Shown: positions 1 through 41,335, counted from the first letter of the stretch. The stretch: DNA of 64,000 nucleotides from Hyalangium minutum (GCF_000737315.1 NZ_JMCB01000034.1:1-64000), one strand, 5' to 3'. Made by a program: numbers and translations. Notes: generated by a model not told the origin, from the letters alone.

Positions 1-8395
<8,395 letters not shown>

Positions 8396-8398
8396 GGA

Positions 8399-11300
8399 TC
8401 AAGTCACTTCCGTGGAGCGAGTGCCGCCCAGCAACTGCTCTCCCAGGCTTGCAAGCTCGTCGTCAGACATCTCGTCCAGCGCGCGCTCAGTGATTTCCTG
8501 CTTCAGTTCCCCGGCCGAGTGGGCAGCCTGCGTGGCAGCGGCTTCACCTCGCAGGCCCGCGGTGTCCACTGACACTCCGTCTTCGAGCGCCGCTCCGAGC
8601 AAGGAGCAGAGGTACTCAGTGAGCGCCGCGACATGGGGGTACGTCCACACCAGAGTCGCTGAGAGTGTGAAGCCCAGCCGGGCCTCCAACCTGTTGCGCA
8701 GTTCCAGGCCCATCAGCGAGTCGAAGCCCAGCGCCTTCAGGGGCGTCTCCCGATCGATACGTGAGGGCTTCAGCCGGAGCACCGCCGCCGCCTGCTCCCG
8801 TACCAGCGACTCCATCATCCCCGGCCGATCCACCGCGCTCGCGGCCCGCAAGCGCGCCACCAACTCGGGATCTCCCTTCTGCGGGGCTGCCTTCGTCTGC
8901 AGCAGCTCCTTGAAGCGCGTCATCGTCGCCAGGTGCGGATAGAACTCGACCCACTGGCGTACATCGAGCGGGACCACGCCCACCTGCGCCTCCTCGGCGT
9001 GCAGCAGTTCCCCCAGCACACGGAGCCCCTGCTGCGGCGTCAGTTGGCTCATGCCCCGCTGGGAAAGCCTCTCGCCCCGGTTGGCCAGCGCTGCGGCCAT
9101 GCCCACTTCCGAGAACGCTCCCCACTGCACGCTCACGCACGGCAGCCCCTGCGCCTGGCGGTACTCCGCCAGCCCATCCATGAACGCATTGCCCATCGCG
9201 TAGTTGCTCTGCCCGGGCGAGCCCAACAGCGACGCGGCTGACGAGTACATCACCACGAAATCCAGCTCCTTCTTCCTCGTCGCCTCGTGCACGTTCCACC
9301 CTCCACCCACCTTTGGCCTCAGCACTCGGCTCACCTTCTCTGCCGTCTGCTGCTCCAGCAGCCCGTCCTCCACCACTCCCGCCGCGTGCACCACTCCCTT
9401 CAACGGCCCCATCCCCTCCGCCATCTCCACCGCCTTCCTCACCTCTTCCACCTTCCCCACGTCACCTCGGCTCACCTCCACTCGCGCTCCCCGGGCCCTC
9501 AGCTCCTCCACCTGACCCCGCTGCTCCTCACTCTCCGCTCCGCCTCGCCCCATCAGCACCAGCCGCCTGGCTCCCTGCTCCACGAGCCACTTCGCCACCG
9601 ACAGGCCCAGCCCTCCCAACCCTCCTGTCACCAGGTAGCTGCTCTCTTCCTTCAGCAGCCCTGCTTCCGCTCCCATCGAGATTGGGACATCCGGCTCTGA
9701 CAGATCCACCACCAGCTTCCCGGTGTGCCGATCCTGCGCCGTCTCCTGGAGCGCGACCGGAAGGCGTGAGACGGGAAGGAGTTGATGCGCCAGCGGCTTC
9801 AGGATGCCGCTCTCGTTCAGCCGGGCGACCTCCTGCAACAAGCTCGCAGCCTGCTGGGGAGGGTTGCGCAGGAGGATGGCGACATCCACCAGGGCGAGCA
9901 TCGCCGCCGCCTGCTCGACCGACAGCGGCCTCGGCAATGGGACAACGGAGAACATGGGTGCGGTGATGACGGAGGTCACCTCCGAGCGCCCTGCCAACAT
10001 GACCTGCTGGCCCACCGTGAAACTCTCGACGCCGGAGCCCACCGCGTCGATGTGGCCCACGCAGTCTCCAGCCAAGCCCGCAGCATCTCCCGAGGGAACC
10101 TGCAGCACCACCGCCGCCACCCTCACCCGCACTTCACCGGAGCCGGGAGGGCGCACTGGGATCTCTCGCAGCGCCAGCCGGTCCGAGCCCGTGGACGCCC
10201 CCAGCTCCAACCGGAACGCTCGCGCACCCGCCTTCTCCTTCCGCTCGGCACGGCGCACCGTCTCCATCTTCTCGAGCCGGCCTACGTACGTGCCCGCCTC
10301 GCGCAGCACCCACTCCTCTTCCTGCGACTCGGCCAGCAGCTGCCTCACCAGCAACTCCTGACCTGAGGCCCCATCCACATCCACCCGTCTGCAGGACAGC
10401 TCCGGGCGCTCCATCGCCAGAGTCCGGCCCAGGCCCCACAGCCCGACCTGCCCCAGCGACACCGGGGTGGCATCTCCCTCCACCCGCTGTGCGCCCTTCG
10501 TCACCAGCCACAGCCGCGGCGCCTGGCGCCAACGCTGCTGGCCCATCGCCTTCACCAACTCCTGCACCCGCAGGAACGCCCTCTCCTGCCCTCCCAGCAC
10601 CTCCTCGGCGCTGCTGTTCTCCCGCACCACCACATCCAGGCCGTGGCACATCACCACGCCTCGCCCTCCCTCATCACTGAAGGCCTGCTCCAGCGCAGCG
10701 GCCATCGGAACGCCCGCTGACGGCTTCCACGCCACCACCTGCTGGCCTCGCGCCTCCAACTGCCGGGCGACTCGCTCGGCCCACCCGCCCTCATCGAGCA
10801 CCACCAGCCAGCGGCCCGGCTTCGACACTTCCTCCGCCGCAGCCTCCTGCTTGAGCCAGCGCTGCACCAGGAGCGGCAAGCCCTCCTGCTTCACAGTCTG
10901 CGTGCCGCCCAGCGGCGCCGCACGCAGCCCGCGCACCTCGGCCACCAGCTGCCCTGCGTCGTCCCTCAGCTCGATCTCTGCTTCCCACTCCCCGCCCTGG
11001 GCCGTGCCCACCCGCACGAAGCTCCACATGCGCGGGGACACCTCGCGATACACCCTCACTCGCGATAGCAGCACCGGGACGGAAGGGCCTGCGTCTCCTG
11101 CCGCCGCCTCCCCTGTCGGGCCAGCCGCCTGGCCTATCACCTGAAGCGCCGCGTCCAGCACGGCTGGGTGCAGCCGGTACGCGCGGTCCTGCACCACCGC
11201 CTCTGGCACTTCCAGGCGGCCCAGAGCCTCCCCGGCGCCGCTCCACAACTCGCGCACGCCCTGGAACGTGGGCCCGTACTCGAGGCCCTTGCCTCTCAGC

Positions 11301-14300
11301 TCTTCATAGAAGCCATCGACCGGCTTGCCTGAACTCATTCTGGCGCGAAGAACCTCCAGCGCCTCGAGCTGCACCGGCTGCTCCGCCACACGCCTCACCT
11401 GCCCGCTGGCGTGTAGCGTCCACTGCGCCTCGCCCTCCCCCTGGCTGCTGACACGGAAGCTACCTTCCGCCGGTCCCTCCACCGTCAGCGCCACCTGCAC
11501 GCGCCGGCCTTCCTCCCCCAGCACCAGCGCCGCTCGGAACCTCACCTCTTCCAGCTCGTACGCGCCCTCCGTCCCAAACGCCTCCTTCGCCGCCCACAGC
11601 CCCATCTCCACATACCCGGTTCCTGGCACCACCACTGCTCCGCCCACACGGTGATCCTTGAGGTACGTCACTCGTGACACGCTGAGCGTGCTCTCCCAGA
11701 AGCGCGTCCCCTGCTGCGTCGACACGCTGAATGCCGCTCCCGCAAGCGGGTGCCCTCCTTCCCCTCTCACCAGCCCTGCGCTCGCGGGCGCGTCCCCCTT
11801 CGTCTGCACCCAGAATTTCTCACGCTGCCAGGGGTAGGTCGGCAGCGGCACGCACCGGCCCTGACTCTCGGGGCCCTTGCTCCACTCCACTCGCCCTCCC
11901 CACGCATACACACTCCCCAGCCCTTCCAGCAGCGCCCTCCTCTCCCCCTGCTGCCTCCTCAGGCTCCCCACCACCCTCACCCTCTCCTTCGCTCCTGCCT
12001 CCTCCACCACCTGCTGCATCACCGCCATCAACACCGGGTGCGCGCTCACCTCCACCACCACGCTCCTCCCTCCTCCCATCGCTCCCTTCAATCCCTTCGC
12101 GAAGTACACGGGCTCTCTCATGTTCCTCACCCAGTACTCCGCTCCCATCCCTCGCCCCTCCTCCTTCTCCCCTGTCACTGTCGAGTACAGCGCCACCTTC
12201 CCCGCCTGTGGCCTCAGCCCCGAAAGCTCTCTCCTCAGCGGCTCCTTCAGCTCCTCCATCTGCGGGCTGTGTGCCGCCACATCCATCTTCACTCGCCGGC
12301 TGAACACTCCCCTCTTCTCCCAGCCCCTCAACAACTCCTCCACCGCCTCCTTCTCCCCCGCTATCCCCGTCATCCTCTCGCTGTTCACCGCGCTCACCGC
12401 CACCCGCCCCTCGTAACCCTTCAGCTCCTCCTTCACCTGCTCCCACCCCAACTCCACCACCCCCGTCGCCCCCTGCCCGCTCTTGCTCTTCATCAACTGA
12501 CTTCTCTTCCAAATCACCTCCGCTCCCTGCCTCGCGCTCAGCACTCCCGCCGCATACGCAGCCCCCACCTCCCCCATGCTGTGCCCCACCACCGCCTCGG
12601 GCTCCACTCCCCACGCCCTCCACTGCTCCGTCAGCCCCACCTGCATCGCGTACAGCGTCGCCTGTATCTGGTCCGTCCTCTCCGGCTCCTCTCCCTTCAG
12701 CGCCTCCACCACCGAGTAGCCACCCACCTCCCTAAACCCCGCCTCACACTCCTCCACCGCTCGCCGGAACACCTCCGAGCTCTCCATCAGCTCCTTCCCC
12801 ATCCCCTTCCACTGCGCTCCCTGCCCCGAGTACACGAACACCACTCGCGCGCTCCCCTCTCCTCCCCTCCCGCTCACCACCCCACTCACTTCCCTCCCCT
12901 CCGACCAGCCCCTCAAGCCCTCTCTCACCTCCTCCACGCTGCTGCCCACCACCGCCAGCCGGTGCTCGTGCTGGCTCCTCCTCATCAGCCCCGTGTACGC
13001 GACGTCCCCCAGCCTCAACCCCTCCTCTCCCTCCAGGTACCCCGCGTACTCCTTCGCCGCCTCCTTCAGCGCTCCTTCACTCCTCGCTGACACCACCACC
13101 ACGTGCTCCCCTCCCTCCTCTCCTCCCCTCTCCTCACGCCGGGGCCCCTCCTCCAACACCACGTGCGCGTTCGTCCCGCTCAGCCCGAACGAGCTCACTC
13201 CTGCCACCCGCGCCTTCTCTCCCCTCTTCCACTCCTGCCCACCTCCCACCACTCGCAGCCGGCTCCCCTCCAGCTCTATCCGCGGGTTCAACGCCTCGAA
13301 GTTCACGTGCTTCGGCAGCTTCTCCTTCTCCAGCGACAGCACCGTCTTGATCAGACCCGCTATCCCTGCCGCCGCCTCAAGGTGCCCCACGTTCGTCTTC
13401 ACCGAGCCCACTGCGCACAGCCCGGCCCCTTCCCCCGGCGCGCCCAACACCTCCCTGAGCGCTTCCATCTCGATCGGGTCCCCCAGCGGCGTCCCCGTCC
13501 CGTGCGCCTCCACGTAGCTCACGTCTGCCGGCTTCACGCCCGCGCTCTCCAGCGCCTTGCGCAGCAACGCCTGCTGCGACAACACGTTCGGCGCCGTCAG
13601 CCCCGTGCTCCTCCCGTCCTGGTTCACTGCTGAGCCTCGGATCACCGCTCGGATCCGGTCTCCATCCCTCACCGCGTCCGACAACCTCTTGAGCACCACC
13701 ACCCCACAGCCCTCTCCCCTCACGAACCCGTTCGCCTTCGCGTCGAACGCTCGGCACCTCCCGTCCGGCGACAGCGCCTGCATCTGGATGACCAGCTGCA
13801 TCGTCCATGGAGACAGGATGAGGTTCACGCCCCCGGCGAGCGCCACGTCGCTCTCGCCCGAGCGCAGGCTCTGACAGGCCAGGTGCACCGCCACCAGCGA
13901 CGACGAGCACGCCGTGTCCACCGTCATGCACGGCCCCTGCAACCCCAGCACGTACGAGAGCCGGCCACTGCCGAAGCACGCCCCCACTCCTGTCGTGGCG
14001 TAGGCGTCCAGCGTCTCCTCTCCCGCATCCCGCGTCAGGTGCAGGTAGTCCTGGGTCATGATGCCGGTGAAGACTCCGGTGCGCGTCCCGTTCAGCGCCT
14101 CCAGCGGAATGCCCGCGTTCTCCAGAGCCTCGGTGGAGACCTCGAGCAGGAGCCGATGCTGTGGATCAATCCCGGACGCCTCTCGCGGCGAGATGCCGAA
14201 GAACGCCGCGTCGAAGCCGTCCACCTCGTCGAGCAGCGCCGCCCACCGTCCTCCCTGCAGCGACGGCTCCACGCGCCAACGGCTATTGGGGATTTCCCTC

Positions 14301-14473
14301 ACCGTGTCGATGCCCTGCTCCAAGGTCCGCCAGAACGACTCGGGATCCTTTCCTCCGGGGAAGCGGCAGCTCAGTCCGACTATCGCGAGTGGCTCGCTCC
14401 TGGCCCGCTCGAGCGCTGCAATCTTCGCTTCCGCCTTCTCTAGCGCCTGAATGGCACGCTGGATCGTCGACAC
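8399..14473 (-). CDS. Modular type I PKS, monomodular: dock-KS-AT-DH-(degenerate ER)-KR-ACP-dock
   Basis: 2024 aa ORF, GTG start with GAAGGA upstream. [24 protein letters not shown]; AT GHSMG and DVAAHS; DH DHRVGGAVVVPG and HPAVLD; truncated ER remnant; KR GGLGGLG...NYAMGN; ACP LGFDSLMG; helical docking segments at both ends. Confidence 0.96.
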   Translation of the reverse strand: MSTIQRAIQALEKAEAKIAALERARSEPLAIVGLSCRFPGGKDPESFWRTLEQGIDTVREIPNSRWRVEPSLQGGRWAALLDEVDGFDAAFFGISPREASGIDPQHRLLLEVSTEALENAGIPLEALNGTRTGVFTGIMTQDYLHLTRDAGEETLDAYATTGVGACFGSGRLSYVLGLQGPCMTVDTACSSSLVAVHLACQSLRSGESDVALAGGVNLILSPWTMQLVIQMQALSPDGRCRAFDAKANGFVRGEGCGVVVLKRLSDAVRDGDRIRAVIRGSAVNQDGRSTGLTAPNVLSQQALLRKALESAGVKPADVSYVEAHGTGTPLGDPIEMEALREVLGAPGEGAGLCAVGSVKTNVGHLEAAAGIAGLIKTVLSLEKEKLPKHVNFEALNPRIELEGSRLRVVGGGQEWKRGEKARVAGVSSFGLSGTNAHVVLEEGPRREERGGEEGGEHVVVVSARSEGALKEAAKEYAGYLEGEEGLRLGDVAYTGLMRRSQHEHRLAVVGSSVEEVREGLRGWSEGREVSGVVSGRGGEGSARVVFVYSGQGAQWKGMGKELMESSEVFRRAVEECEAGFREVGGYSVVEALKGEEPERTDQIQATLYAMQVGLTEQWRAWGVEPEAVVGHSMGEVGAAYAAGVLSARQGAEVIWKRSQLMKSKSGQGATGVVELGWEQVKEELKGYEGRVAVSAVNSERMTGIAGEKEAVEELLRGWEKRGVFSRRVKMDVAAHSPQMEELKEPLRRELSGLRPQAGKVALYSTVTGEKEEGRGMGAEYWVRNMREPVYFAKGLKGAMGGGRSVVVEVSAHPVLMAVMQQVVEEAGAKERVRVVGSLRRQQGERRALLEGLGSVYAWGGRVEWSKGPESQGRCVPLPTYPWQREKFWVQTKGDAPASAGLVRGEGGHPLAGAAFSVSTQQGTRFWESTLSVSRVTYLKDHRVGGAVVVPGTGYVEMGLWAAKEAFGTEGAYELEEVRFRAALVLGEEGRRVQVALTVEGPAEGSFRVSSQGEGEAQWTLHASGQVRRVAEQPVQLEALEVLRARMSSGKPVDGFYEELRGKGLEYGPTFQGVRELWSGAGEALGRLEVPEAVVQDRAYRLHPAVLDAALQVIGQAAGPTGEAAAGDAGPSVPVLLSRVRVYREVSPRMWSFVRVGTAQGGEWEAEIELRDDAGQLVAEVRGLRAAPLGGTQTVKQEGLPLLVQRWLKQEAAAEEVSKPGRWLVVLDEGGWAERVARQLEARGQQVVAWKPSAGVPMAAALEQAFSDEGGRGVVMCHGLDVVVRENSSAEEVLGGQERAFLRVQELVKAMGQQRWRQAPRLWLVTKGAQRVEGDATPVSLGQVGLWGLGRTLAMERPELSCRRVDVDGASGQELLVRQLLAESQEEEWVLREAGTYVGRLEKMETVRRAERKEKAGARAFRLELGASTGSDRLALREIPVRPPGSGEVRVRVAAVVLQVPSGDAAGLAGDCVGHIDAVGSGVESFTVGQQVMLAGRSEVTSVITAPMFSVVPLPRPLSVEQAAAMLALVDVAILLRNPPQQAASLLQEVARLNESGILKPLAHQLLPVSRLPVALQETAQDRHTGKLVVDLSEPDVPISMGAEAGLLKEESSYLVTGGLGGLGLSVAKWLVEQGARRLVLMGRGGAESEEQRGQVEELRARGARVEVSRGDVGKVEEVRKAVEMAEGMGPLKGVVHAAGVVEDGLLEQQTAEKVSRVLRPKVGGGWNVHEATRKKELDFVVMYSSAASLLGSPGQSNYAMGNAFMDGLAEYRQAQGLPCVSVQWGAFSEVGMAAALANRGERLSQRGMSQLTPQQGLRVLGELLHAEEAQVGVVPLDVRQWVEFYPHLATMTRFKELLQTKAAPQKGDPELVARLRAASAVDRPGMMESLVREQAAAVLRLKPSRIDRETPLKALGFDSLMGLELRNRLEARLGFTLSATLVWTYPHVAALTEYLCSLLGAALEDGVSVDTAGLRGEAAATQAAHSAGELKQEITERALDEMSDDELASLGEQLLGGTRSTEVT
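12400..13231. repeat. Near-identical copy of 1-832
   Basis: Same alignment, offset 12399. Confidence 0.92.
13154..13780. repeat. Near-identical copy of 7046-7672
   Basis: Same alignment, offset 6108. Confidence 0.9.
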
Positions 14474-14723
14474 GATTGAGAATCCTTCGCGGGGATCACG
14501 CGAGTCAGTTCATGGATATGCGAGAGCTCGCAGAGGCCGATTGGCAGCCTCGGGCGCGATCCGAGGCCGCGCACCAGGCGCTCGCTCCGCAACCAGGGCA
14601 GCATTGTCTGGTCCCTGATCAGTTCGGTAGCATCGCATTTCGAACATTATTGGCATGACCCGAACAGGACGAACACGCCCCATCTGGTCATGCGAAAACC
14701 AGAGAACCTGGACTGACGGAAAC
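14474..14723. promoter_or_regulatory. Divergent promoter region between the two PKS arms
   Basis: Non-coding gap between opposite-facing starts (14473 minus, 14724 plus). Contains palindrome TGCGAG-AG-CTCGCA (~14519-14532), inverted repeat GCCTCGG-N7-CCGAGGC (~14546-14566) and three CGAACA copies (14641, 14661, 14670). Actual promoter elements not identified. Confidence 0.55.
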
Positions 14724-15767
14724 ATGAAGCCTGGCAATGCAGATCCGGCTGACGCCTCACTCCCGGAGGGAGTCGATGAGGCGCTCGCCCTCGAGCTGTA
14801 CCGGCAGATGGTGTTCCTGCGCATCTTCGACGAGCGGGCGCTCGTCTACCATCGGCATGGACGCATCGGGACGTGGGCGATCTCGTGGGGCCACGAGGCC
14901 ATCCAAGTCGGTGCAATGTTGGCCTTGAAGGCCAGCGACTGGGCGTTCCCCTCCTATCGCGAGAACAAGCTCGGACTGGTGCGAGGGATGTCTCCGGCGC
15001 ACGTGCTCGCCGGATGCCGGGGACACCCTCAGGGCTGGTGGGATCCACATCAGTGGCGGCTCGGCGCGATCAGCATCCCCGTGGCCTCGCACGTTCCCCA
15101 CGCCGCGGGCTTCGCCTGGGGCGAGCGGCTCCAGGGGCGGGATACTGTCGCGCTCTCCTTCTTTGGAGATGGAGCGACGTCCCAGGGGGAGTTCCACGAG
15201 GGCGCCAATATGGCCGGAGTGATGAACGCTCCGCTAATCCTCCTGTGCACCAACAACCAGTGGGCGATCAGCACGCCCGTGCACCGGCAGACCCGGGCCC
15301 GCACGCTCGCGGACAAGGCCGCAGGCTATGGCATGCTGGGCGTGCGCGTGGACGGCAATGACGTGCTCGCCGTCTACCAGGCGGTGTCCCAGGCGGCGGC
15401 CCGGGCCCGCGCAGGAGAAGGCCCCACCTTCATCGAGTGCCTCATCTACCGCGCACAGGCCCATGCGTTCCCCGATGATCCTTCCGCCTACCGCGACGAC
15501 ACCGAGGCGGAGCAGGCCCGGCGTGAGGAATGCGTGGGGCGCTACGCGAACCTCCTCATGCGGCGTGGGCTGCTGACGGAGGAGCTGGCGGCCCGGTACC
15601 GCGAGGAGTTCCTGGCGAAGATGGCGGATGCGATCGCCGAGGCTGAGGCATTGCCTATCCCCGGTCCCGAGCTCGCCTTCGCGCATGCCTATGAACGGAA
15701 GACCCCTGCCCTGGAGCGGGATCTCTCGGAGCTGCAGCGCATCCAGGCCAAACAGGGCACAAGGTAA
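14724..15767 (+). CDS. 2-oxoacid dehydrogenase E1 alpha-like subunit (ThDP-dependent), cluster-encoded
   Basis: ThDP motif GDGATSQGEFHEG...NNQWAIS, also FPSYRE and YRAQAHAFPDD. The ORF track starts at 14655; the in-frame ATG at 14724 (MKPGNAD) is preferred but the start is uncertain. Confidence 0.92.
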   Translation: MKPGNADPADASLPEGVDEALALELYRQMVFLRIFDERALVYHRHGRIGTWAISWGHEAIQVGAMLALKASDWAFPSYRENKLGLVRGMSPAHVLAGCRGHPQGWWDPHQWRLGAISIPVASHVPHAAGFAWGERLQGRDTVALSFFGDGATSQGEFHEGANMAGVMNAPLILLCTNNQWAISTPVHRQTRARTLADKAAGYGMLGVRVDGNDVLAVYQAVSQAAARARAGEGPTFIECLIYRAQAHAFPDDPSAYRDDTEAEQARREECVGRYANLLMRRGLLTEELAARYREEFLAKMADAIAEAEALPIPGPELAFAHAYERKTPALERDLSELQRIQAKQGTR

Positions 15768-15774
15768 CTTCATC

Positions 15775-16752
15775 ATGAGCACGATGCTTTTCGCGGAGGC
15801 GCTCACGAGCGCCCTGCGTGAGGAGATGGAGCGCAACCCGAAGTTGATCCTCCTGGGCGAGGACATCGGCCGTAGCGGGGGCGTCTTCCGCATCACGGTG
15901 GGCCTCCAAGCCCGGTTCGGAGCAGAGCGCGTGGTGGACACGCCCGTGGCCGAGGCAGGCATTGTGGGCTCGGCCGTGGGCCTGTGCCTCTCCGGGCTGC
16001 AGCCCGTCTGCGAGCTGCAGTTCGACGCGTTCAGCTACCCGGCGCTGAACCAGATCCTCACCCACGTGAGCCGCTACCGCTGGCGCACGCAGGGCAAGGC
16101 GCCGATGCCCATGGTGATCCGGATCCCCTGCGGCGGCGGCGTGCGCGCGCCCGAGCTGCACTCGGACTCGCCGGAGGCGTACTTCTGTCACACGCCCGGG
16201 CTCACGGTTGTCTCTCCTTCGACGCCCGCGGACGCGAAGGGGCTGCTGACCTCCGCGCTGCGCAGCCCCGATCCCGTGGTGTTCTTCGAGCCGAAGAAGC
16301 TCTACCGCCACTTGCGCGGCGAGGTGCCAGACGGCGAGCACCTCGTGCCGTTCGGCAAGGTCCGGACGGCCCGCGAGGGCAGCGACGTCACCTTGATCGC
16401 GTGGGGCGCGATGATGGAGATCGCGCTGGCTGCAGCGGAGGCGCTGGCCACGGAGGGAGTCTCCTCGCATGTGTGCGATGTGAGAACCCTGTCGCCGCTC
16501 GATGAGGAAGGACTGCTCCAGGCGGCTCGCGTGACAGGGCGGGTTGTCATCATCCAGGAGTCACCGCGGAACTGCAGTGTGGCGAGCGAGCTCGCCGCCC
16601 TCCTGGCGGAGCATGCGATGTACGACCTGAAGGCACCGATCAAGCGGGTGAGCGGCTTCGATGTGCCGCACCCTTACTACAGCATCGAGCACCACCAGCG
16701 CCCCGACTGCGCGCGCGTCGTCGACGCAGTTCACCGCATCTTGGAGGCGTAA
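15775..16752 (+). CDS. 2-oxoacid dehydrogenase E1 beta-like subunit
   Basis: MSTMLFAEAL...LLGEDIGRSGGVFRIT...RVVDTPVAEAGIVG...ELQFDAF...HSDSPEAYF...VVFFEPKKLY, typical of PDH/BCKDH E1 beta. ATG at 15775, 7 bp after the E1 alpha stop. Confidence 0.94.
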   Translation: MSTMLFAEALTSALREEMERNPKLILLGEDIGRSGGVFRITVGLQARFGAERVVDTPVAEAGIVGSAVGLCLSGLQPVCELQFDAFSYPALNQILTHVSRYRWRTQGKAPMPMVIRIPCGGGVRAPELHSDSPEAYFCHTPGLTVVSPSTPADAKGLLTSALRSPDPVVFFEPKKLYRHLRGEVPDGEHLVPFGKVRTAREGSDVTLIAWGAMMEIALAAAEALATEGVSSHVCDVRTLSPLDEEGLLQAARVTGRVVIIQESPRNCSVASELAALLAEHAMYDLKAPIKRVSGFDVPHPYYSIEHHQRPDCARVVDAVHRILEA

Positions 16753-16756
16753 CACG

Positions 16757-18457
16757 ATGGGACTGGTCTATGCCCTCCCCGATCTGGGTGAGGGAGTCGC
16801 GGAAGCGGAAGTCGTTCACTGGTGGGTGTCCGAAGGCGATCGCGTCGAGGAAGACGCGCCCATGCTGGAGGTAACCACGGCCAAGGCCACCGTGCAGGTG
16901 CCCGCGCCGGGGAAGGGCGTGGCGCTGCGGGTGCTCGCGCGCAAGGGAGACAAGGTCGAGGTGGGCATGCCGCTCATCGTCATCGGGGAAGCCGGTGAGG
17001 ATGCGGATGCGCTGCTGCGGCAGTGGAGCCCCGCGGGCCATTCAGCCGCTCCCGCGGCTCCCACGCCGCAGCCCTCTGCCCCAGCGCCAGCGCCGCGCTC
17101 GATCCAGGCGCTCCCGAGGGTGCGCAAGCTGGCCGAGCAACTCGGTGTCTCTCTGGAGGCGATTGCCAAGAATGGGCCCATCACCGAGGAGGACGTGCGC
17201 GCGGCGGCGGCCTCTTCCACGGCCCGCTCTCTGCCCGGGCCCGCCCGGAAGCCGGAGCCCACGCCCACAATTCCTGCCCAGGGCGTGAGGGCCCGAGTGC
17301 CCCTGAGCGGGATGCGCCGCACGGCGGCCGAGCACCTCACCCGGACCCAGTCGATTCCGGCGGTCACAGTGGTGGAGGAGGCCTCCTTCGACACCTTGGA
17401 TCTGCTGCAAGGGTTGCTGGGCGTCAGCTATGTCCCGTTCCTGATTCAGGCGGCTGTCTCCGCGTTCACCGAGGTGCCGGAGATCAACGCCCTCTTCGAC
17501 GAGAAGCTGCAGGAGCTGGTGATCTACGACCGGGTGGATCTCGCGATCGCGGTCCACACCGAGGAGGGGCTGGCTGTCCCCGTCATCCACGACTGCGCGA
17601 AGATGACGCTGCGGGAACTGGAGGCCCGGGTGCAGGAGTTGGGCACGCAGGCCCGGGCTCGGAAGCTGAGCCTCGCCGACAGCATGGGCGGGACGTTCAC
17701 CATCACCAGCCCAGGCGATGCCGGAGCCTTGCTGGCCACGCCTCTGCTCAATGTGCCTCAGGTGGCCATCCTCGGTCTGCACCGGCCCACGCGCCGGCCC
17801 GTGGTGGCCGACGGCGAGCTGCGCGTGGGGCTCGCGGCCCATGTCACCCTGACGCACGATCACCGCGTCATTGATGGCCTCACCGCCTGCCGCTTCCTGC
17901 GCCGGATCACGGAGCGCCTCTCGCACCCGCTCCAGGCGCTGGACGAGGGTGTGTTCCGTCCTGGCTCTGCCCCCAAGGCTACGGCGGAGGCTGCGGCCGG
18001 GCAGCGTTCCCCCATGGGAGGTCCGGAGCAGCCGGGGAGCCCTGCCACCGGCCAGCCTGGAGAGCTGGCTCGCGAGCTGTCGAGCTTGGATCCGCGCAAG
18101 CGCCGTCTCCGGCTCGAGGCCTTCTTGGATACCGAGCTGCTGCGGCTCATGAAGCGCACGCGCGCCATCGATCGGAAGTCGACCTGGAAGGATCTGGGCT
18201 TGGATTCGTTGGTCGCGGTAGGGCTGCGAAACGTGCTGGTGCACGCGCTCGATCGCTCGCTGCCTGCCACCCTCCTCTTCAACCGCACCACGCCCGCGGC
18301 GCTCGCCGAGCACCTGCTGGGAATGCTCGAGGATGACCCGCCCGAAACCCAGGAGATGGATCCAGACGCGCTCCTCGCGAGCTTGAAGGGTCTGCCAGAG
18401 AACGAGGCACGCGCTCGGCTCGCGGAGCGGCTGGCGGCGGGGATGGAGCGACGATGA
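16757..18457 (+). CDS. Dihydrolipoamide acyltransferase (E2) fused to a C-terminal PKS-type acyl carrier protein
   Basis: Lipoyl domain (LPDLGEGVAEA...EVTTAKA), Pro/Ala linker, short subunit-binding domain (PRVRKLAEQLGV), catalytic TLTHDHRVIDG, then ACP (DLGLDSLVAVGLRN...LPATLLF) and a helical tail. The stop overlaps the next ATG (ATGA). Confidence 0.93.
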   Translation: MGLVYALPDLGEGVAEAEVVHWWVSEGDRVEEDAPMLEVTTAKATVQVPAPGKGVALRVLARKGDKVEVGMPLIVIGEAGEDADALLRQWSPAGHSAAPAAPTPQPSAPAPAPRSIQALPRVRKLAEQLGVSLEAIAKNGPITEEDVRAAAASSTARSLPGPARKPEPTPTIPAQGVRARVPLSGMRRTAAEHLTRTQSIPAVTVVEEASFDTLDLLQGLLGVSYVPFLIQAAVSAFTEVPEINALFDEKLQELVIYDRVDLAIAVHTEEGLAVPVIHDCAKMTLRELEARVQELGTQARARKLSLADSMGGTFTITSPGDAGALLATPLLNVPQVAILGLHRPTRRPVVADGELRVGLAAHVTLTHDHRVIDGLTACRFLRRITERLSHPLQALDEGVFRPGSAPKATAEAAAGQRSPMGGPEQPGSPATGQPGELARELSSLDPRKRRLRLEAFLDTELLRLMKRTRAIDRKSTWKDLGLDSLVAVGLRNVLVHALDRSLPATLLFNRTTPAALAEHLLGMLEDDPPETQEMDPDALLASLKGLPENEARARLAERLAAGMERR

Positions 18458-21400
18458 AGCCCGCGGTGCCCTCTTCCACTCTCGAGCCCATTGCCCTCAT
18501 CGGCATGGCGTGCCGTTTTCCCGGCGGTGCGGACTCCCTGGATGACTTCTGGAAGCTGCTCCGCCAGGGCACGGACGCCATGGCCGCGGTCCCCGCTGAC
18601 CGCTGGGACGCGGCCGCCTACTACGACGCCGACCCGAACGCCTCGGGGAAGATCCATGCTCAGCGCGCCGGTTTCCTCCGGCAGGTGGATCAGTTCGACG
18701 CCGAGTTCTGGGGCATCTCCGCGCGCGAGGCCGAGAGCATGGATCCTCAGCAGCGGCTGCTGCTGGAGGTCGCGCACGAGGCGCTCGAGCACGCGCTGCA
18801 GCCCACCGAGGAGCTCGCCGGGAGCCGTACGGGCGTCTTCGTGGGCATCTCCACGGATGACTACGGGCGGATGATGAGCCCGTCTGACGTCTACTCGGGC
18901 ACCGGCGCGTTCTTCAGCGTCGCCGCAGGGCGCCTCTCCTATCTGTTGGATCTGCGGGGGCCCGCAATCTCGGTAGACACCGCCTGTTCGTCATCCCTGG
19001 TGGCACTGCACCTGGCCTGCCAGAGCCTGCGCTCCGGAGAGTGCGATCTGGCGATCGTGGCGGGCGTCAACGTCATCGCCAGCCCGGACAAGAGCATCTA
19101 CTTCTCCAGCCTGAGGGCCTTGTCGCCGGATGGCCGGAGCAAGACGTTCGATGCCAGCGCGGATGGCTACGGCCGGGGCGAGGGGTGTGGCGTCCTGGTG
19201 CTGAAGCGGCAGACGGACGCCGCGAAGCAGGGGGACCGTGTGCTGGCGCGGGTGCGTGGCACGGCGGTCAACCAGGATGGGCGCAGCAATGGATTGACCG
19301 CGCCCAATGGCCTGGCCCAGGAAGCGGTGCTGCGAGAGGCGCTCTCGCGCTCGGGCCTGAAGCCGGGGGATCTGCAGTACATCGAGGCGCACGGCACGGG
19401 CACACCTCTCGGGGATCCGATCGAGATCGAGGCGCTCGGGTCCGTGCTGTGCCAGCGGCGATCTGCTTCGGATCCGCTGCTCGTCGGATCGGTGAAGACG
19501 AACATCGGCCACCTGGAGGCGGCCGCAGGCGTCGCGGGCATCATCAAGGTGGTCCTGTCCCTGCAGCACAAGCAGATCCCACCGCACCTGCACCTGAAGA
19601 ACCCGAACCCGCTCATTCCCTGGAACGAGCTGGCCCTGAAGGTGCCTGTCGATCTGACCCCGTGGCCCTCGCGCGCTTCTCGGATGGCAGGGGTGAGCTC
19701 GTTCGGAATCAGTGGGACCAACGCCCATGTCATCCTCGAGGAGGCTCCTGCTGAGCCGCCCCCGGCTCCCGTCGAATGGGATGACTCCAAGGGCGTGCTG
19801 CTGCCCCTCTCCGCTCGCTCCACTCAAGCCCTGCGCTCCCTGGCTCTCTCCTACGCTCAGCTCCTGGACTCCGGCTCCTTCGACTCTCTGCTGCCTCAGC
19901 TCTCCTTCTCTTCAGGCACTCGCCGCTCTCACCACCCCCACCGCCTGGCTGTCGCTGGCCGCTCTCCCCAGGAACTGGCTGCCTCTCTTCGCTCCTTCTG
20001 CGAGCAGCCCTCCTCTCAGCCTCGCTCCTCTCCTCCCAGAATCGCCTTCGTCTTCCCGGGCCAGGGCTCTCAGTGGCTTGGCATGGGCCGACAGCTCTAC
20101 TCCTCCGAGCCTGTCTTCCGTCAGGCTCTCGACTCCTTTGACGCCGCCGTCCTCAAACTCTCTGGCTGGTCCATTCTTCAGGAGCTCTTCTCCGACGCTC
20201 CTCACCCTCGCCTTCTCTCCGACGTCGACGTCATCCAGCCCTGCATCGTCGCCCTCCAGCTCGCCCTGGCCTCCCTCTGGCGCTCCTGGGGCGTCGTCCC
20301 AGAAGTCGTCATCGGCCAGAGCATGGGCGAAGTCAGCGCCGCTTGCTTCGCCGGCGCTCTGTCCCTCGAGGATGCTGCTCGCGTCATCTGCGCTCGCAGC
20401 TCCCTGGCCAAGCGCACCAGCGGCCAGGGCGCCATGGCCACCGTGGAACTCTCCTCGGACCAGCTGACTCCTCTTCTCGAGCCCTCCGTCTCCATCGCCG
20501 CCATCAACGGCCCCTCCTCCTGTCTCGTCTCAGGCGAGGCCGCTGCCGTCCATCGCCTCATCTCTTCTCTCTCCTCCTCTGGCGTCTTCTGCCGCCCCGT
20601 CAAAGTCGACTACGCCTCTCACAGTCCTCAGATGGAGCCTCTTCGCCAGCCTCTGCTCGACGCACTCCACGGCGTCTCGGGCCTCAACTCCCTCATCCCC
20701 CTTCGCTCCACCGTCACCAACTCCTGGCTCGACGGCTCTCAGCTCGGGCCCGACTACTGGTTCTCTAACCTCCGTCAGCCCGTCCTCCTCTTCCCTGCTG
20801 TCCATTCCCTCCTCTCTGAGGACTCCATCGACCTGCTCCTGGAGATCAGCCCTCACCCTGTCCTCATTCCCTCCCTGGAGCAGGCTGTCTCCCTGGCCAA
20901 AGTCGACTGCGCTGTCCTTCCTTCTCTTCGCCGCGAGCAGCCTGAGCGCCTCACACTTCTCTCCTCTCTGGCCGCCCTTTTCTCTCGCGGCTTGAACCCA
21001 CACTTCTCCAACCTCCTCCCTCCTTCCCTCAAGCCTCTCCCTCTTCCCTCTTACCCCTGGCAACGAAAGCGGCACTGGATCGCAGCCCCTGCGCGCACGG
21101 GTGCCGGACGCCCACAGGATGCCGGGGCCCATCCGCTGCTGGGACACGGACTCGTCTCCTCGGTGCAGCAAGGGGCCCGCCTCTGGGAGACCGAGCTCAG
21201 CCTCCAGGGAGTGCCGTACCTCTCCGAGCACACGGTCGAGGGGAGGCCCATCCTCCCCGGAGCGGCCTATCTGGAGATGGCCCTCTCCGCAGCAGTCCAG
21301 GCTTTCGGGCGTGGCACCTTCACTCTGGAGGATGTCACCCTGCACGAGGCCATGGAGCTGCAGGAATCGGCTCCTCGCACCGTGCAGCTCGCGATGACCG

Positions 21401-24400
21401 AGACCCGCACGGGGGCTGGCTCCTTCCGCATCTCGAGCCGCGAGCCCACAGCGAGTGGCACGGGAGGATGGACGCTGCATGCCAGCGGCACCGTTCATGT
21501 GGAGGCCGCGAGCCCGTCCGCGACCGAGCGGCACGACCTCGGCGCCACCCAGGCCCGCTGCCCTGAGCGCGTCTCGAGAGACGCCCACTACGCCTCGCTC
21601 CAGGCCCGGCGGCTGCAGCACGGCACAGCCTTTGCCGGCATCGTCGATGTCTGGCGCTCCTCGAACGAGGCGCTCGCCCGCATCTGCTCACCCGAGCGTC
21701 GAGCCTTCGATGGCCAGTCCTACCGGATCGATCCCGCGCTCCTGGACTCTGCGCTCCAAGCGTCCCTGGCGACGCTGAGCGGGTATCCGTCCTCCCAGAA
21801 CTCCGCGCCCGTGGTCCCCACCGGTTGGCAGACCGTGCGCGTGCATGGCATCCCGAATCATGCCGGTGAGCTGTGGAGCCACGCCTCGCTCAAGAGCCAC
21901 GATGAGGCAGCGGGCGAGACTCGGGTGGACCTGGCCTTGCTGGACTCCTCGGGACGCGTGCTCGTCGAGGTGCTCGGCCTGCGCATGAAGCGGCTAGGAT
22001 CCGCGGCCAGCTCGGCCCGCTCCGTCCTGGCCATCGAGTGGCGCGCCGCTCCCGCAGCCGAGACTCCGGCCCGACAGCCCGGCAGCACTCAGGGGGCTTG
22101 GGTCCTGGTCTCCCAAGAGCCTGACGAGGCTCTGGCCGCGGCGCTCCAGCAGCAATTGGAGGCGCATGGAAGGTCCGTGCTCCGCATCCACGCGGGCCGT
22201 CTCGCTGCCAGTGGCGGGCCAGCGGCCTCGGATGCGTTGCTTCAGGAGGCGCTGGGCAACGCCACCTCGTGCGAGGGCGTCGTCCTCCTCGCCAGCCCCG
22301 CGGCGGGTACCTCCGTGGAGCCAATGTCCGCAGTGGAGGCAGGTGAGCCGGCGTGGTCGAGTGCCCTCACCCTCGTCCAGACCCTGACGCGGAGGCGCTG
22401 GCGCGATGCCCCACGCCTCTGGCTGGTCACCCGGGCAGCCCAACCGTTCGGCTCCAGCCCCTCGGAAGGTTCACTCACCACCTCACCCCTCTGGGGCTTC
22501 GGGAGGACGCTCGCGTACGAGCACCCCGAGCTGCGGTGCACCCGTGTGGACCTGGGTTCCCTCTCCGGCAAGGAGGAGGCCGAGCGCCTGGCCGCGGAGC
22601 TCCTGTCCGAGCCCCGCGAAGAGGAGATCGCGCTCCGCCCGGACGGACGGTATTCCGCCCAGCTCGTGCAGCGGGAGCCGCGTCCCCCTGCCCTGATCAC
22701 CGCTCCCGCGAAGGGGCGGCCCTTCCGGTTGGAGATCGATGCTCCAGGCTCACTCGATCGCCTCTCCCTGCGAGAGACCGAGCGCCGCGCTCCAGGCCCT
22801 GGCGAGGTGGAGATCGCCGTCAAGGCAGCGGGTCTGAACTTCCTCGACGTCCTCGTGGCGCTCGGCGTGATCACCAACGATCCCCAGGCTCCGTCGTCCT
22901 TCCTGGGCGTGGAGTGCGCCGGGACCGTGGTCTCCACGGGCGAAGGCGTCACCGGCCTACGTCCGGGAGACCGGGTGGTGGCGCTCGTGCCCGGCGCGTT
23001 TGCCTCCTTCATCACGACGTCCGCCCACCTGGTCTCGCCCATCCCCGGCACGCTCACGTTCGCGGAGGCGACGACCCTCCCGATCGCCCACACCACCGCC
23101 TACTTCGCCCTGGCCCACAAGGCGAGGCTCGCGAAGGGCGAGCGCGTCCTCATCCACTCCGCCGCGGGAGCCGTGGGCGAGGCAGCCCTCCAGTGGGCCC
23201 GCCATATCGGCGCGGAGATCTTCACGACCGTGGGTACCGAGGAGAAGCGCGAACACCTGAAGTCGCTCGGGGTGCGCTTCATCTCCGACTCGCGCTCGCT
23301 GCGCTTCGTGGAGGACATCCGCGAGTGGACGGGCGGCGAAGGCGTGGATGTCATCCTCAACAGCCTCTCGGGAGAGGCCATCCCCAAGGGCCTGGAGCTG
23401 CTCCGCGACGATGGGCGCTTCATCGAGCTGGGCAAGCGGGACTACCTGGACAACGCGCAGCTCGGCTCGCGGCCCTTCCTCAAGGGGTTGTCCTTCTCGC
23501 TCGTGGACCTGCGCGCCATGCTGCTCAAGCGGCCGGAGCAGCTGGGCCAGCTCCTGCGAGAGGTGCTGGCGCTGGTGGAGCAAGGCACGCTGAAGCCCAT
23601 CCCGCACCGCGCCTTCCCCATCGCCGAGGCTGCCGAGGCCTTCCGCGCCATGAGCCAGGGTCGGCACCTCGGGAAGCTCGTTCTCGAGTTCGAGGAGACG
23701 TCGACGCCCATCGCCGCGCCGCGCTGGGCAGGCCACTTCCGGCCGGATGCCACCTACCTGGTGACGGGTGGACTCGGCGGACTCGGGCTGTCCCTGGCGC
23801 GGTGGATGGTGGAGCGAGGCGCCCGGCACCTCGTGCTCGCCAGCCGGAGTGGCGCGGACTCCAAGGTAGAGGAGCCTCTGGCAGCCCTGAGACGCACGGG
23901 CGCGGAGGTTCAGGCCGTGCGCGCGGATGTGGCGAACCGGGCCGAGGTCGCCCGGTTGCTGGAGGGTATTGCCACCTCGGGCCGACCCCTGCGCGGCGTG
24001 TTCCACCTGGCGGGTCTGCTGGACGATGCGCTGCTCGCGCAGCAGGACCGGGAGCGCTTCCGCCGGGTGTTGGCGCCCAAGGTGGACGGAGCGTGGAACC
24101 TGCACGTGCTGACCCAGGACCTGCCGCTGGACCTGTTCGTCCTCTACTCCTCGGTGGCGTCGCTGGTGGGCTCGCCTGGGCAGGCCAACTACGCCGCGGC
24201 CAACGCGTTCCTCGACGCGCTCGCGGAGTACCGGCGAGCCCACGGATTGCCGGCGCTCAGCCTCGGCTGGGGGCCCTTCTCCGAAGCCGGACTCGCGGCC
24301 GCCCAGGCCAACCGCGGCAGCCGCGTCCAGGAGCGTGGCATGGCGAGCCTCACTCCCGCCGAGGGCGAGACGCTGCTCGCGACCCTCCTCGGCCGGGACG

Positions 24401-24942
24401 AGGCCCACGTCGGCGTGGTCCAGTTGGATGTCCGGCAGTGGCTGGACTTCTATCCCACCCTGGCTTCCTCCACCCTCTTCTCGCAGTTGGCGCGGGGCTC
24501 CGAGGGCGCTACCCGCCAGGACGCGGCGCCTCGCCAGGCGATCCTCGCAGCGGCACCCGAGCGGCGCAGGATGCTGATGGAGCGCTTCGTCCGTGACCAG
24601 CTCGCCCGCGTGCTGCGAGCGGACCCGACGCATATCCCCGCCACTGCGCCGCTCAAGACGCTGGGCCTGGACTCGCTCACGGGCCTGGAGCTGCGCAACC
24701 GGCTGGAGTCCGGGACGGCGCTCAAGCTGTCGTCCACGCTGATCTGGACCTACTCGAGCGTGTCGGCGCTGGCGGAGCACCTGCTGGGGCTCATCGCGCC
24801 GGTGGAGCCTCAGCCCCCGAGCAGCGCTCCGCCAAAGCAGACGGAGGAAGAGCGGCTGTACGCAGAGGCCAAGACCATGTCCGACGAGCACCTCATGGCC
24901 GAGCTGGCACGTGAGCTGGAAGACGCGGAGCAGGAAGCATGA
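18454..24942 (+). CDS. Modular type I PKS: KS-AT(methylmalonyl-type)-DH-ER-KR-ACP
   Basis: 2162 aa. [10 protein letters not shown]; AT GQSMG and DYASHS; [14 protein letters not shown]; [13 protein letters not shown]; [19 protein letters not shown]; [11 protein letters not shown]; C-terminal docking helix. No N-terminal docking extension. Confidence 0.96.
19687..21078 (+). repeat. AT cassette copy 1 (~1.39 kb), near-identical to 26241-27632
   Basis: Constant offset of 6554 checked at 19687, 20101 and 21051. Runs from [14 protein letters not shown] to YPWQRxRHW. Confidence 0.94.
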
Positions 24943-33400: not shown

Positions 33401-35108
33401 GCTCGAGGCGCTGCTCACCCGCGAGCGCCAGGAGGCGGGTAGACCCCTCCGCGGGATCGTCCACCTCTGGAGCCTCGACGCCCCCTCTACGCCGGAGTTG
33501 ACGGACGAGACGCTGGCGCACGCGCAGCAACTGAGCTGCGGCAGCACCCTCCATCTGATCCAAGCCCTGGCGCGCAGCGGCACTGAAGAGGGCTGCCGGC
33601 TGTGGTTGGTGACCCGCGAAGCCATGGAAGCAGGCGGGCGCGCGAGCCTCTCGGTGGCCCAGGCGCCGCTGTGGGGCCTGGCCGGGGTCATCGCGGCGGA
33701 GCACCCGGATCTGTGGGGCGGAGCGATCGATCTGGAGCAAGCACCGGAAGACATCCTGGCCGCGAGACTCCTCGCGGAGCTCAGCTCGAGGGACGGAGAG
33801 GATCGCATCGCGTGGCGCGAAGGCCGTCGCCTCGCAGCCCGCCTGGTGCGCACCACGCCTGCGCCCAAGCAGGTCCTCACGATCAGACCGGACGCGACCT
33901 ACCTCGTGACAGGAGGGCTCGGCGCGCTGGGACTCGCCACCGCCCGCTGGCTCGTCGAGCGGGGCGCGCGGCATGTGGCCCTGGCCGGCCGAAGCAGGAA
34001 CGAACAGGCCACAGGCCCCATCCAGGAGCTGGAACGCTCGGGCGCCACGGTTCGCGTCTACCAGGCTGACATCTCCGAACAGACCCAGGTGAAAGCGCTC
34101 CTGGCCTCCATCGCCCAGGAGGGCCCGGCGCTGCGCGGCATCCTCCACGCCGCCGGAGTGGTGGAGGACGGCTTGCTGCTCAACCAGCGGTGGGACCGGT
34201 TCGCGTCCGTGCTCGCCCCCAAGGTGCGCGGCACCTGGAACCTCCACGCCGCGGCTCCGGCGCTCGACTTCTTCATCTCCTTCTCCTCGGTGTCCTCGCT
34301 GCTCGGCGCGCCCGGCCAGGGCAACTACGCGGCGGGCAACGCGTTCCTGGACGCGCTGGCCCACCATCGGCGTGCACAGGGAGCTCCCGCGCTCAGCATC
34401 CACTGGGGTCCGTGGGAGGTCGGCATGATGGCGCGGCTGGACGAGCGCCTCCGGAAACGCGCCGCTGGGCGCGGCTGGGGTGTCCTCTCCGTCGCGCAGG
34501 GCCTCCAAGCGCTGGACCGGGTCATCGGCGATGGACGCGCGGAGCTGGCCGTCCTGCCAATGGACTGGACATCCCTCGGAGAGGCGGGAGGCCGCGTGCC
34601 TCCGCTGGTCCGCGAGCTCGTCCAGTCCGGCGGGAGTGGATCGGCGGCCCCGAAGCCCGACCCGGTGCGCATCCTGCGCGAAGCCCTCCAGGCCGCACCG
34701 CCGGCCGAGCGGCCGCAGATGGTCGAGCTCCAAGTCGGCCGAGAGGTCCGCAGCGTCCTCGGGCTCGACTCGGGAGAGGGCGGTGGGCATCTCGATCCAC
34801 GCCACCGTTTCTCCGAGCTGGGCATGGACTCGCTCATGGCCGTCGAGCTCAAGAACCGGCTCCAGCGCGAGCTGGGCGTGCGGCTGTCGCCCACCACCAT
34901 CTTCAACTACCCCAGCGTGGCCGCGCTGACGGCGCACCTCCTGGAGCTGCTGGCCTCGTCTGACCTGTTCCCTCAAGCGACCCGGCCGCCATCTACGGCG
35001 CCTCAGGCCGCGCCCACGGAGGCCCTGCCCGAGGCTCCCGTGCCCGACGATCTCTCCGATGAAGCGCTGATCGCCCTCATCGCCCGTAAATACGAATCCC
35101 GCAGCTGA
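30405..35108 (+). CDS. Modular type I PKS: KS-AT(malonyl)-KR-ACP
   Basis: 1567 aa. [25 protein letters not shown]; AT GHSVG and SHAFHS; no DH region; KR GGLGALG, VED, NYAAGN; [11 protein letters not shown]. Confidence 0.96.
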
Positions 35109-40603: not shown

Positions 40604-40651
40604 TGAAACGCCTGTAAGCCACCTCCCGCTGTGACGCCGGAGCTGCCACCT

Positions 40652-41335
40652 ATGTCAGTCGACGCCATCGTCTCGTTGAAACAGGTGCACAAGAGCTATG
40701 CGCTCGGGGAGACCCGGGTGCAGGCCCTGCGGGGCGTGGACCTGGAGCTTCACCGGGGTGAGTTCACCGCACTCGTGGGGCCCTCGGGCTCCGGCAAGAG
40801 CACCTTGCTGCACCTCGTGGGGTGCATCGATGAACCGGACTCGGGCAGCGTCCTCTTCGATGGGACGGACGTCGGCAAGCTGGACGACAACGCGCGCAGC
40901 CGGCTGCGCAACCACAAGGTCGGCTTCATCTTCCAGTCGTTCAACCTGGTCCCGGTGTTGAGCGTCTACGAGAACATCGAGCTGCCGCTGCTCATCCACC
41001 CGAACCTCACGCCCACCGAGCGGCGAGAGCGCGTCAAGGCGGCGATCGCGGACGTGGGACTGGAGGAGTTCGCCCAGCAGGTGCCAGACAAGCTCTCGGG
41101 GGGCCAGCGCCAGCGCGTCGCCATTGCCCGAGCCCTGGTCACCCAGCCGCTGCTGGTGCTCGCGGACGAGCCCACCGCCAACCTGGACTCGGTGACGGCG
41201 CACCGGATCATCGATCTGATGTTGGAGCTGAACGAGAAGCGGAAGGTGACCTTCCTCTTCTCCACGCACGACGAGAAGCTCATGGTGCGCGTGGCCCGGA
41301 CGCTCCACCTGCAGGATGGAGCGCTGCGCCCATGA
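40652..41335 (+). CDS. ABC transporter ATP-binding protein (LolD/MacB-like)
   Basis: Walker A GPSGSGKST, GFIFQSFNL, signature LSGGQRQRVAIARAL, Walker B LVLADEPTANLD, H-loop STHD. Confidence 0.95.
   Translation: MSVDAIVSLKQVHKSYALGETRVQALRGVDLELHRGEFTALVGPSGSGKSTLLHLVGCIDEPDSGSVLFDGTDVGKLDDNARSRLRNHKVGFIFQSFNLVPVLSVYENIELPLLIHPNLTPTERRERVKAAIADVGLEEFAQQVPDKLSGGQRQRVAIARALVTQPLLVLADEPTANLDSVTAHRIIDLMLELNEKRKVTFLFSTHDEKLMVRVARTLHLQDGALRP

Follow-up and report, generated by a model that had tools for sequence, protein, structure and literature searches.

In a 64,000-nt stretch of the Hyalangium minutum genome (GCF_000737315.1, NZ_JMCB01000034.1:1-64000; hereafter the window), positions 14724–18457 of the plus strand hold three coupled genes for E1α, E1β and E2 subunits resembling those of pyruvate dehydrogenase (PDH). 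The E2 is fused to an acyl carrier protein (ACP) of the kind found in modular polyketide synthases (PKSs), and its gene runs directly into that of a PKS module. The contig (JMCB01000034.1, assembly GCA_000737315.1) comes from the H. minutum type strain, JMCB00000000 being DSM 14724T (PMC5441343). Domains, motifs, gene coupling, orthology and clade signatures, which are laid out below, make it quite probable that this cassette is a dedicated PDH-like starter loader of the ripostatin/phenalamide type, which would load phenylacetyl derived from phenylpyruvate onto the assembly line. Genes were mapped as open reading frames and their translations, domains were assigned with Pfam, equivalog scores were taken from NCBIfam, and structural matches come from the Protein Data Bank (PDB).

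Organization of the loading cassette

E1α (14724–15767, plus strand; 347 residues; Pfam E1_dh, E = 8e-81) is the thiamine diphosphate (ThDP)-binding subunit of a heterotetrameric 2-oxoacid decarboxylase; its start codon agrees with both gene call and orthologue, and the protein contains Tyr78-Arg79, the ThDP motif GDG148...NN177 (from 15165) and the catalytic-loop residue His247. E1β (15775–16752, plus strand; 325 residues) follows after 7 nt and consists of pyrimidine-binding and C-terminal transketolase-like domains (Pfam Transket_pyr and Transketolase_C), with Glu60 in the motif DTPVAE and His129 in ELHS. Another gap of 4 nt separates it from the gene of the E2-ACP fusion (16757–18457, plus strand; 566 residues; Pfam Biotin_lipoyl, E3_binding, 2-oxoacid_dh and PP-binding). 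The lipoyl domain of this protein (residues 7–76, 16775–16984; Biotin_lipoyl, E = 2.5e-15) has Lys43 in the motif TAKAT (16883–16885); it is followed by a peripheral-subunit-binding domain (residues 117–148, 17105–17200; E3_binding) and by an acyltransferase core (residues 179–394, 17291–17938; 2-oxoacid_dh, E = 4.6e-61) with Ser318 and, in the motif DHRVIDG, His369 (17861–17863).

After the core and a linker comes a PKS-type ACP (approximately residues 441–522, 18077–18322; PP-binding match over residues 468–520, E = 3e-8) with Ser484 in the motif GLDSL (18206–18208); this serine, the site of phosphopantetheine attachment, is kept in all 12 fused members of the family alignment. Matches in the PDB divide the protein in the same way: the E2 part finds the E2 cores of PDH and 2-oxoglutarate dehydrogenase, the 172-residue extension only ACPs of modular PKSs. 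A tail of 44 residues (residues 523–566, 18323–18454) ends the protein; its motif, LKGLPExEA, is common to the Hyalangium-like, Corallococcus and Myxococcus members of the family and takes the form (L/I)RGMxE in the Sorangium-type ones.

The stop codon of the fusion shares the tetranucleotide ATGA (18454–18457) with the start of PKS module 1 (18454–24942, plus strand), whose domains, assigned from Pfam and motifs, are ketosynthase (KS), acyltransferase (AT), dehydratase (DH), enoylreductase (ER), ketoreductase (KR) and ACP. The first KS (KS1) has the active-site motif DTACSS and is of the cysteine type; just 10 residues precede its conserved core (18454–18486), so that it is without an N-terminal docking helix, and the frame is not extendable upstream. 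No loading module of the AT-ACP, KSQ or coenzyme A (CoA)-ligase/adenylating type is present in the 64-kb window, the line itself being cut by the contig end. A preliminary description of this region had listed the three coupled genes with their ThDP, lipoyl-lysine and DHRVIDG motifs, a PKS-type ACP on E2 with its serine at 18206, the overlap of the E2 gene with the next PKS start and the lack of a canonical AT-ACP or CoA-ligase loading module in the window, and the Pfam assignments and motif positions given here agree with it on each point.

Relatives of the cassette

The gene order E1α-E1β-E2-ACP-KS opens PKS lines of at least four different contexts in myxobacteria, and the cassette was seen to recur solely at the heads of such lines. 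Among its named relatives, the locus at the phenalamide position of Myxococcus stipitatus is the closest by sequence comparison, and a Sorangium line that combines cis- and trans-AT modules comes next. In M. stipitatus DSM 14675 (CP004025.1, 5.555–5.577 Mb) the genes stand in the same order, with a 2,176-residue KS-AT-DH-ER-KR-ACP protein on their 3′ side and a type II thioesterase on their 5′ side; unlike there, no type II thioesterase is encoded upstream of the cassette in the window. The proteins are collinear over their full length (identity 75% for E1α, 81% for E1β, 60% for E2-ACP and 50% for the first PKS), and the two loci are alike in the E2-ACP/PKS overlap, in the domain order of module 1, in the LKGLPExEA tail, in the use of cis-ATs and in a first PKS that starts 10 residues before its KS with no N-terminal docking helix. 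KS1 of the window is 76% identical to KS1 of M. stipitatus, whereas every other KS compared reaches 55–60%, and KS2 pairs with KS2 of M. stipitatus. Because of these identities, the grouping of KS1, the starts free of a docking helix and the tail held in common, the cassette and module 1 appear to have been inherited as one unit. The abstract of Park et al. 2016 on the phenalamide cluster reportedly mentions three pyruvate-dehydrogenase subunits in the loading system. An insertion in MYSTI_04326 yields phenalamide-minus M. stipitatus (PMC13218925, Table 1), and this locus number is in keeping with the place of the M. stipitatus loader (MYSTI_04326–04329) in the genome.

The genes of Sorangium sp. 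So ce381 have the same order, encode proteins that are 68% (E1α), 73% (E1β) and 52% (E2-ACP) identical to those of the window, and show all loader signatures described below. AT-less KS modules and a thioesterase lie directly upstream of them and cis-AT modules downstream, which makes the line a cis/trans-AT hybrid; it differs from the window in a first module that is DH-KR, not DH-ER-KR, in a first KS that has an N-terminal docking helix, and in a longer ACP tail. The ripostatin cluster is a cis/trans-AT hybrid as well, and the Sorangium line is probably of the ripostatin type. In a contig from a soil metagenome, the cassette and module 1 have 84–88% protein identity to those of the window and the same divergent PKS lies upstream; the order was also found in a second soil metagenome contig and in two further short contigs, one of which has a free ACP and part of an adenylation domain upstream as well.

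Fusions of this kind are rare. Among the best 120 of 3,987 E2 relatives, a PP-binding domain is present in 14 clusters (at 90% identity), and all of these that carry an organism name come from Myxococcus, Corallococcus or Sorangium. When the last 237 residues of E2-ACP were used to query 1.84 billion representatives at 50% identity, two fusion representatives were found, in a list so swamped by multi-ACP PKSs that distant fusions could be hidden in it. A scan of genome contigs with E2-ACP gave 35 ordinary E2 genes and no fusion, but these matched through the generic THDHRVID pattern alone and the window's own genome was not recovered either. A full-text literature search for further descriptions of such loaders gave nothing relevant.

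A distant relative in contig SRR14712099 presents a fourth, different loader context: there, a free-standing ACP and a 128-residue adenylation-domain fragment (4566–5715) stand before the cassette and after a PKS that ends in KS-AT.

Residues that distinguish loader E1α and E2 proteins

Searches with E1α return thousands of relatives. Soil metagenomes contribute most of the non-loader clade among them, to which Gaiellaceae also belong, and the E2 relatives found in these sources have no ACP. As identity alone does not decide the substrate, positions were sought that are fixed in the 11 loaders (6 of the 26 in 10 of the 11) and at which 70% or more of the 106 nearest non-loader relatives have another residue. 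Twenty-six positions set the loader E1α proteins apart in this way, and at all of them the window protein agrees with those of M. stipitatus and Sorangium; its signature residues include W51, S54, A74, N81, K82, G97, C98, Q245, A246, F249 and P250. Relative to the non-loaders, I74A, S81N and A82K lie beside Tyr78-Arg79, and His247 is bracketed by A245Q, P246A, T249F and A250P; Y51W and F54S are further changes, and four of the exchanges (W97G, W98C, F54S and I74A) replace a bulky residue by a small one. In an alignment with PDH E1 of Geobacillus stearothermophilus (1W85), Tyr78 and His247 of the window protein correspond to αTyr102 and αHis271, active-site residues of that enzyme. Since the signature is common to the E1α proteins of the window, M. 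stipitatus and Sorangium, it points to a reshaped, probably enlarged pocket throughout the loader clade.

On the side of E2, 27 listed positions split the 12 fused proteins from 105 non-fused ones; all 12 fusions agree at 20 of these and 11 of the 12 at the other 7. Next to the lipoyl lysine, the Asp of the DKA motif is present in 105/105 non-fused relatives and is Ala in 12/12 fusions (D42A; 16880–16882). Within the core, R218Q (17408–17410) replaces an Arg present in 104/105 non-fused relatives, R358G (17828–17830) one present in 97/105, and G263A a Gly present in 105/105. D42A, R218Q and R358G may be related to lipoylation recognition and to a loss of CoA binding; for the latter, the loss of conserved basic residues would fit a fused E2 that has given up binding CoA by its nucleotide end.

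Proposed mechanism, substrate and alternatives

According to the mechanism proposed here, the E1α and E1β subunits with ThDP would decarboxylate an arylpyruvate, most likely phenylpyruvate from phenylalanine, and would reductively acylate the lipoyl group on Lys43 of E2. The E2 core, by means of His369, would then transfer phenylacetyl from dihydrolipoamide onto the phosphopantetheine on Ser484 of its own ACP and not to CoA, and the loaded ACP would prime the cysteine-type KS of the translationally coupled module 1. Re-oxidation of the lipoyl group is presumably left to a housekeeping E3 whose gene lies elsewhere; this E3 might be recruited by the retained binding domain of E2, which may equally tether E1.

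Phenylpyruvate is the best-supported candidate for the substrate and is likely to be the true one, because three lines of evidence taken together favour it: the E1α signature, the ripostatin precedent and the direction of phenalamide assembly. For ripostatin, PMC5490192, citing Fu et al. 2017, describes a PDH-like complex that acts on phenylpyruvate by decarboxylation, the product staying bound as phenylacetyl-S-carrier protein; phenalamide assembly proceeds outward from the phenyl terminus (PMC13148359). The preliminary description had invoked the same ripostatin chemistry, which this second-hand account upholds, and had missed the closest precedent, the cis-AT phenalamide cluster. Its proposal of an aromatic or branched 2-oxoacid has narrowed, the aromatic option (phenylpyruvate) being much better supported and the branched-chain one having fallen behind, and its view of the cassette as a dedicated loader rather than a housekeeping complex gains support from the domains, the equivalog cut-offs given below, the gene order and the M. 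stipitatus orthology.

A number of points weigh against the assignment as a phenylacetyl loader. The locus is known from its sequence alone, and identity by itself does not fix a substrate. The separation of the loaders is modest, with E1α identities of 65–87% within their clade and a very large non-loader clade at 57–64%, and the signature residues were placed by sequence alignment. Genes for E3, a phosphopantetheinyl transferase or a lipoate ligase are absent from the 64-kb window, and we know of no phenyl-terminated polyketide from H. minutum. The equation of the Sorangium hybrid with the ripostatin cluster is a probable one, and the details of Park 2016 and Fu 2017 used here are second-hand.

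Among the alternatives, the one that survives best is that the same machine accepts a different 2-oxoacid (branched-chain, pyruvate, 4-hydroxyphenylpyruvate or indolepyruvate), with a starter other than phenylacetyl; this is a minority prospect, if one to be taken seriously. In databases the relatives bear the name PDH or 2-oxoisovalerate dehydrogenase, the solved structures nearest to the window E1 are E1 of G. stearothermophilus PDH and E1 of branched-chain 2-oxoacid dehydrogenase (BCKDH), the loader and non-loader E1α proteins are about 10 identity points apart, and the downstream line departs from that of phenalamide in the malonyl-type AT of module 3 and in the ER modules of the minus strand. 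Against it stand the agreement with the M. stipitatus and Sorangium orthologues at 26 of 26 signature positions and a KS1 that is a clear orthologue of the M. stipitatus one, in a module with the same full reductive loop.

A second alternative, an ordinary housekeeping PDH/BCKDH operon that makes acyl-CoA and merely adjoins the PKS genes, is very improbable. The cassette does have the complete E1, E2 and binding-domain architecture with all catalytic motifs intact, and it has much in common with housekeeping complexes such as G. stearothermophilus PDH (1W85, 3DUF) and BCKDH (1UM9, 1DTW): the fold families, the ThDP motif, the catalytic Tyr-Arg and His, the lipoyl and binding domains and the His-containing acyltransferase core. 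It differs from them in the linker, ACP and tail added to E2, in the lipoyl motif AKA instead of DKA, in R218Q and R358G, in the 26 changes of E1α, in having no E3 gene adjacent and, presumably, in an acyl acceptor that is ACP and not CoA. None of the three proteins reaches its NCBIfam equivalog cut-off, E1α scoring 379.2 bits against 411.35 (TIGR03181), E1β 291.6 against 321 (NF006667) and E2 248.2 against 449 (NF004309). These scores, the 172-residue extension of E2, the absence of an E3 gene from the window and the rarity of the fusion make the cassette, on sequence criteria, separate from housekeeping PDH/BCKDH; with the overlap of the E2-ACP stop and the KS gene start, the Asp-to-Ala exchange that divides fused from non-fused E2 proteins and the recurrence of the cassette just at the heads of PKS lines, the housekeeping explanation is refuted to the extent that sequence allows.

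There is as little to be said for the cassette or the whole cluster being an inactive relic. The contig ends within the cluster, no product has been assigned to it, and a module on the minus strand (8399–14473) appears to have a degenerate ER; against this, the reading frames are all open, the catalytic residues are all intact, and the independent metagenome relative conserves the cassette and module 1 in the same layout. Least probable of all is a loader of the quinocarcin/naphthyridinomycin type, which would form glycolyl-S-ACP with a two-carbon glycolaldehyde unit drawn from a ketose phosphate: that system, reportedly described by Peng et al. 2012, is said to pass a ThDP-bound unit likewise via a lipoyl group to an ACP and to bypass CoA, but it is a transketolase-like enzyme of actinomycetes that feeds a nonribosomal peptide synthetase (NRPS), whereas the window E1 is of the split α/β 2-oxoacid type with best matches to PDH and BCKDH E1, fits transketolase models weakly (Pfam Transketolase_N, E = 2e-4; NF004559, E = 5e-10 and 38 bits against a cut-off of 488) and has orthologues heading lines that make products with a phenyl-C2 unit at the start.

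The downstream assembly line and its predicted product

Module 1 is the first of four single-module proteins on the plus strand. The domains and motifs of the following three are KS-AT-DH-KR-ACP in module 2 (24939–30398), KS-AT-KR-ACP in module 3 (30405–35108) and KS-AT-DH-KR-ACP with a short C-terminal tail in module 4 (35114–40603). The AT motifs are YASH (methylmalonyl-type) in modules 1 and 2, HAFH (malonyl-type) in module 3 and VASH in module 4; the last was taken as methylmalonyl-type on the assumption that the AT of M. stipitatus module 1, also VASH, installs the C16 methyl of phenalamide. A phenylacetyl starter would be extended by this arm to Ph-CH2-CH2-CH(CH3)-CH=C(CH3)-CH(OH)-CH2-CH=C(CH3)-CO-S-ACP. 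The reductive pattern of the four modules (DH-ER-KR, DH-KR, KR, DH-KR) fits C17 to C10 of phenalamide, and the malonyl-type AT of module 3 implies that one methyl branch is absent relative to phenalamide, so that the predicted chain would equal the C10–C18 part of phenalamide without the C12 methyl. The stereocentres of phenalamide are at positions 12, 13 and 16 (PMC13148359).

On the opposite strand lie a PKS with an N-terminal docking helix and the order KS-AT(VAAH)-DH-KR-ACP (8399–14473, minus strand), in which a degenerate ER remnant appears to lie between DH and KR, and a PKS cut by the contig end, KS-AT(HAFH)-DH-ER-KR-ACP-KS-AT... (2–8398, minus strand). All ATs in the line act in cis. 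The window starts where the contig starts, and because the minus-strand PKS gene runs past this point, the assembly line is incomplete in the window. Of the two arms, the plus arm alone is joined physically to the cassette, and a hand-over of the chain from the plus to the minus arm is the simplest reading of the map. The preliminary description had spoken of a purely cis-AT, two-armed line fed by the cassette; the cis-ATs and the two arms are there on the map, but the coupling extends to the plus arm only. At its C-terminus the module 4 protein has no thioesterase and no obvious docking tail, whereas the three preceding proteins have clear C-terminal docking tails.

The modules on the opposite strand contain ER domains and are not the polyene-forming modules plus NRPS that would be expected for phenalamide; the eight PKS modules for a hexaene and the subsequent NRPS that mark a phenalamide cluster are not seen, no NRPS being present in the window, where the contig end truncates the line. 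With ER domains in the minus-arm modules and no NRPS visible, the product predicted for this line is not phenalamide. The polyketides already known from H. minutum, hyafurones, hyapyrrolines and hyapyrones, were considered as products and are unlikely, because their reported stereocentres at C-18, C-19 and C-20 imply a methyl-hydroxy-methyl terminus; such a terminus does not match a line that opens with a fully reducing module 1 and goes on with DH-KR.

Several features of the PKS genes were observed in passing. The ATs of modules 1 and 2 (20314–20328 and 26868–26882) have GQSMGE where GHSxGE is usual, with Gln for His before the active-site Ser, and are otherwise methylmalonyl-type (YASH); both lie inside a repeat of 1.6 kb that is 92% identical (19482–21078 versus 26033–27632). 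Two other intermodule repeats join 1–832 with 12400–13231 (96% over 833 bp, a repeated AT segment) and 7033–7849 with 13140–13963 (93% over 826 bp). The repeats cover KS-linker-AT, AT or KS segments and indicate that parts of the cluster were recently duplicated or underwent gene conversion; the contig break at window position 1 is probably due to the repeat 1–832/12400–13231. The 2,024-residue protein encoded at 8399–14473 (minus strand) has in residues ~1476–1589 a weak, partial match to ADH_zinc_N_2 (E = 4e-6) with no ADH_N, which looks like a degenerate ER, and its AT motif, VAAH, is unusual.

Genomic setting

Between the divergent genes of the minus-arm PKS and E1α lies an intergenic region of 250 bp (14474–14723 on the map of open reading frames), the presumed promoter region for both arms; a promoter and terminator scan of this region gave no match, the sigma-70 consensus being uninformative for a myxobacterium. 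On the other side, genes identified by domain search as an ABC ATPase, an FtsX permease, a LolA-like protein and another FtsX permease (40631–44859, plus strand) begin 28 nt 3′ of module 4. They may encode an exporter of the product or a self-resistance pump, or else an unrelated Lol-type system, and they mark the right edge of the cluster; beyond them are FolD, a DEAD-box helicase and unrelated regulators. Farther right, the window contains genes for a radical SAM protein (48440–49879, plus strand), a 1,435-residue cyclase-AAA-TPR regulator (49856–54163, minus strand), a 1,133-residue STAS-Ser/Thr kinase (55851–59252, minus strand) and a TonB-dependent receptor (60053–62686, minus strand), in none of which a link to the loader was seen.

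Significance

The mechanism of such loaders is already published, and a cis-AT line fed by one is not new either, since phenalamide is made by cis-ATs. What is added here are a third and a fourth assembly-line context, the E1α and E2 signatures, and a starter prediction for a culturable type strain. A more tentative proposal is that the cassette heads the line for an undescribed phenyl- or aryl-terminated polyketide of H. minutum DSM 14724 and that, in addition, the fused E2 proteins may form a class of enzymes that has abandoned CoA as acceptor. The polyketide would share the phenyl-terminal part of phenalamide and continue as a partly saturated chain. For the enzymes, the loss of the DKA Asp and of two basic residues may be what determines an obligate lipoyl-to-ACP transfer, and the usual assembly of the E2 core has possibly been lost through the C-terminal extension.

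The prediction is a concrete one: a phenyl-C2 starter, derived from phenylalanine without its C1, that would add 118 Da to the ACP. This makes the product easy to look for. The small fusion family (14 clusters) and the signature together provide a key for genome mining; the signature tells loaders from the abundant PDH-like enzymes and offers residues for the re-engineering of starter choice. Finally, module 1 seems to accompany the cassette from one assembly line to another, and the pair may be a portable unit for PKS engineering.

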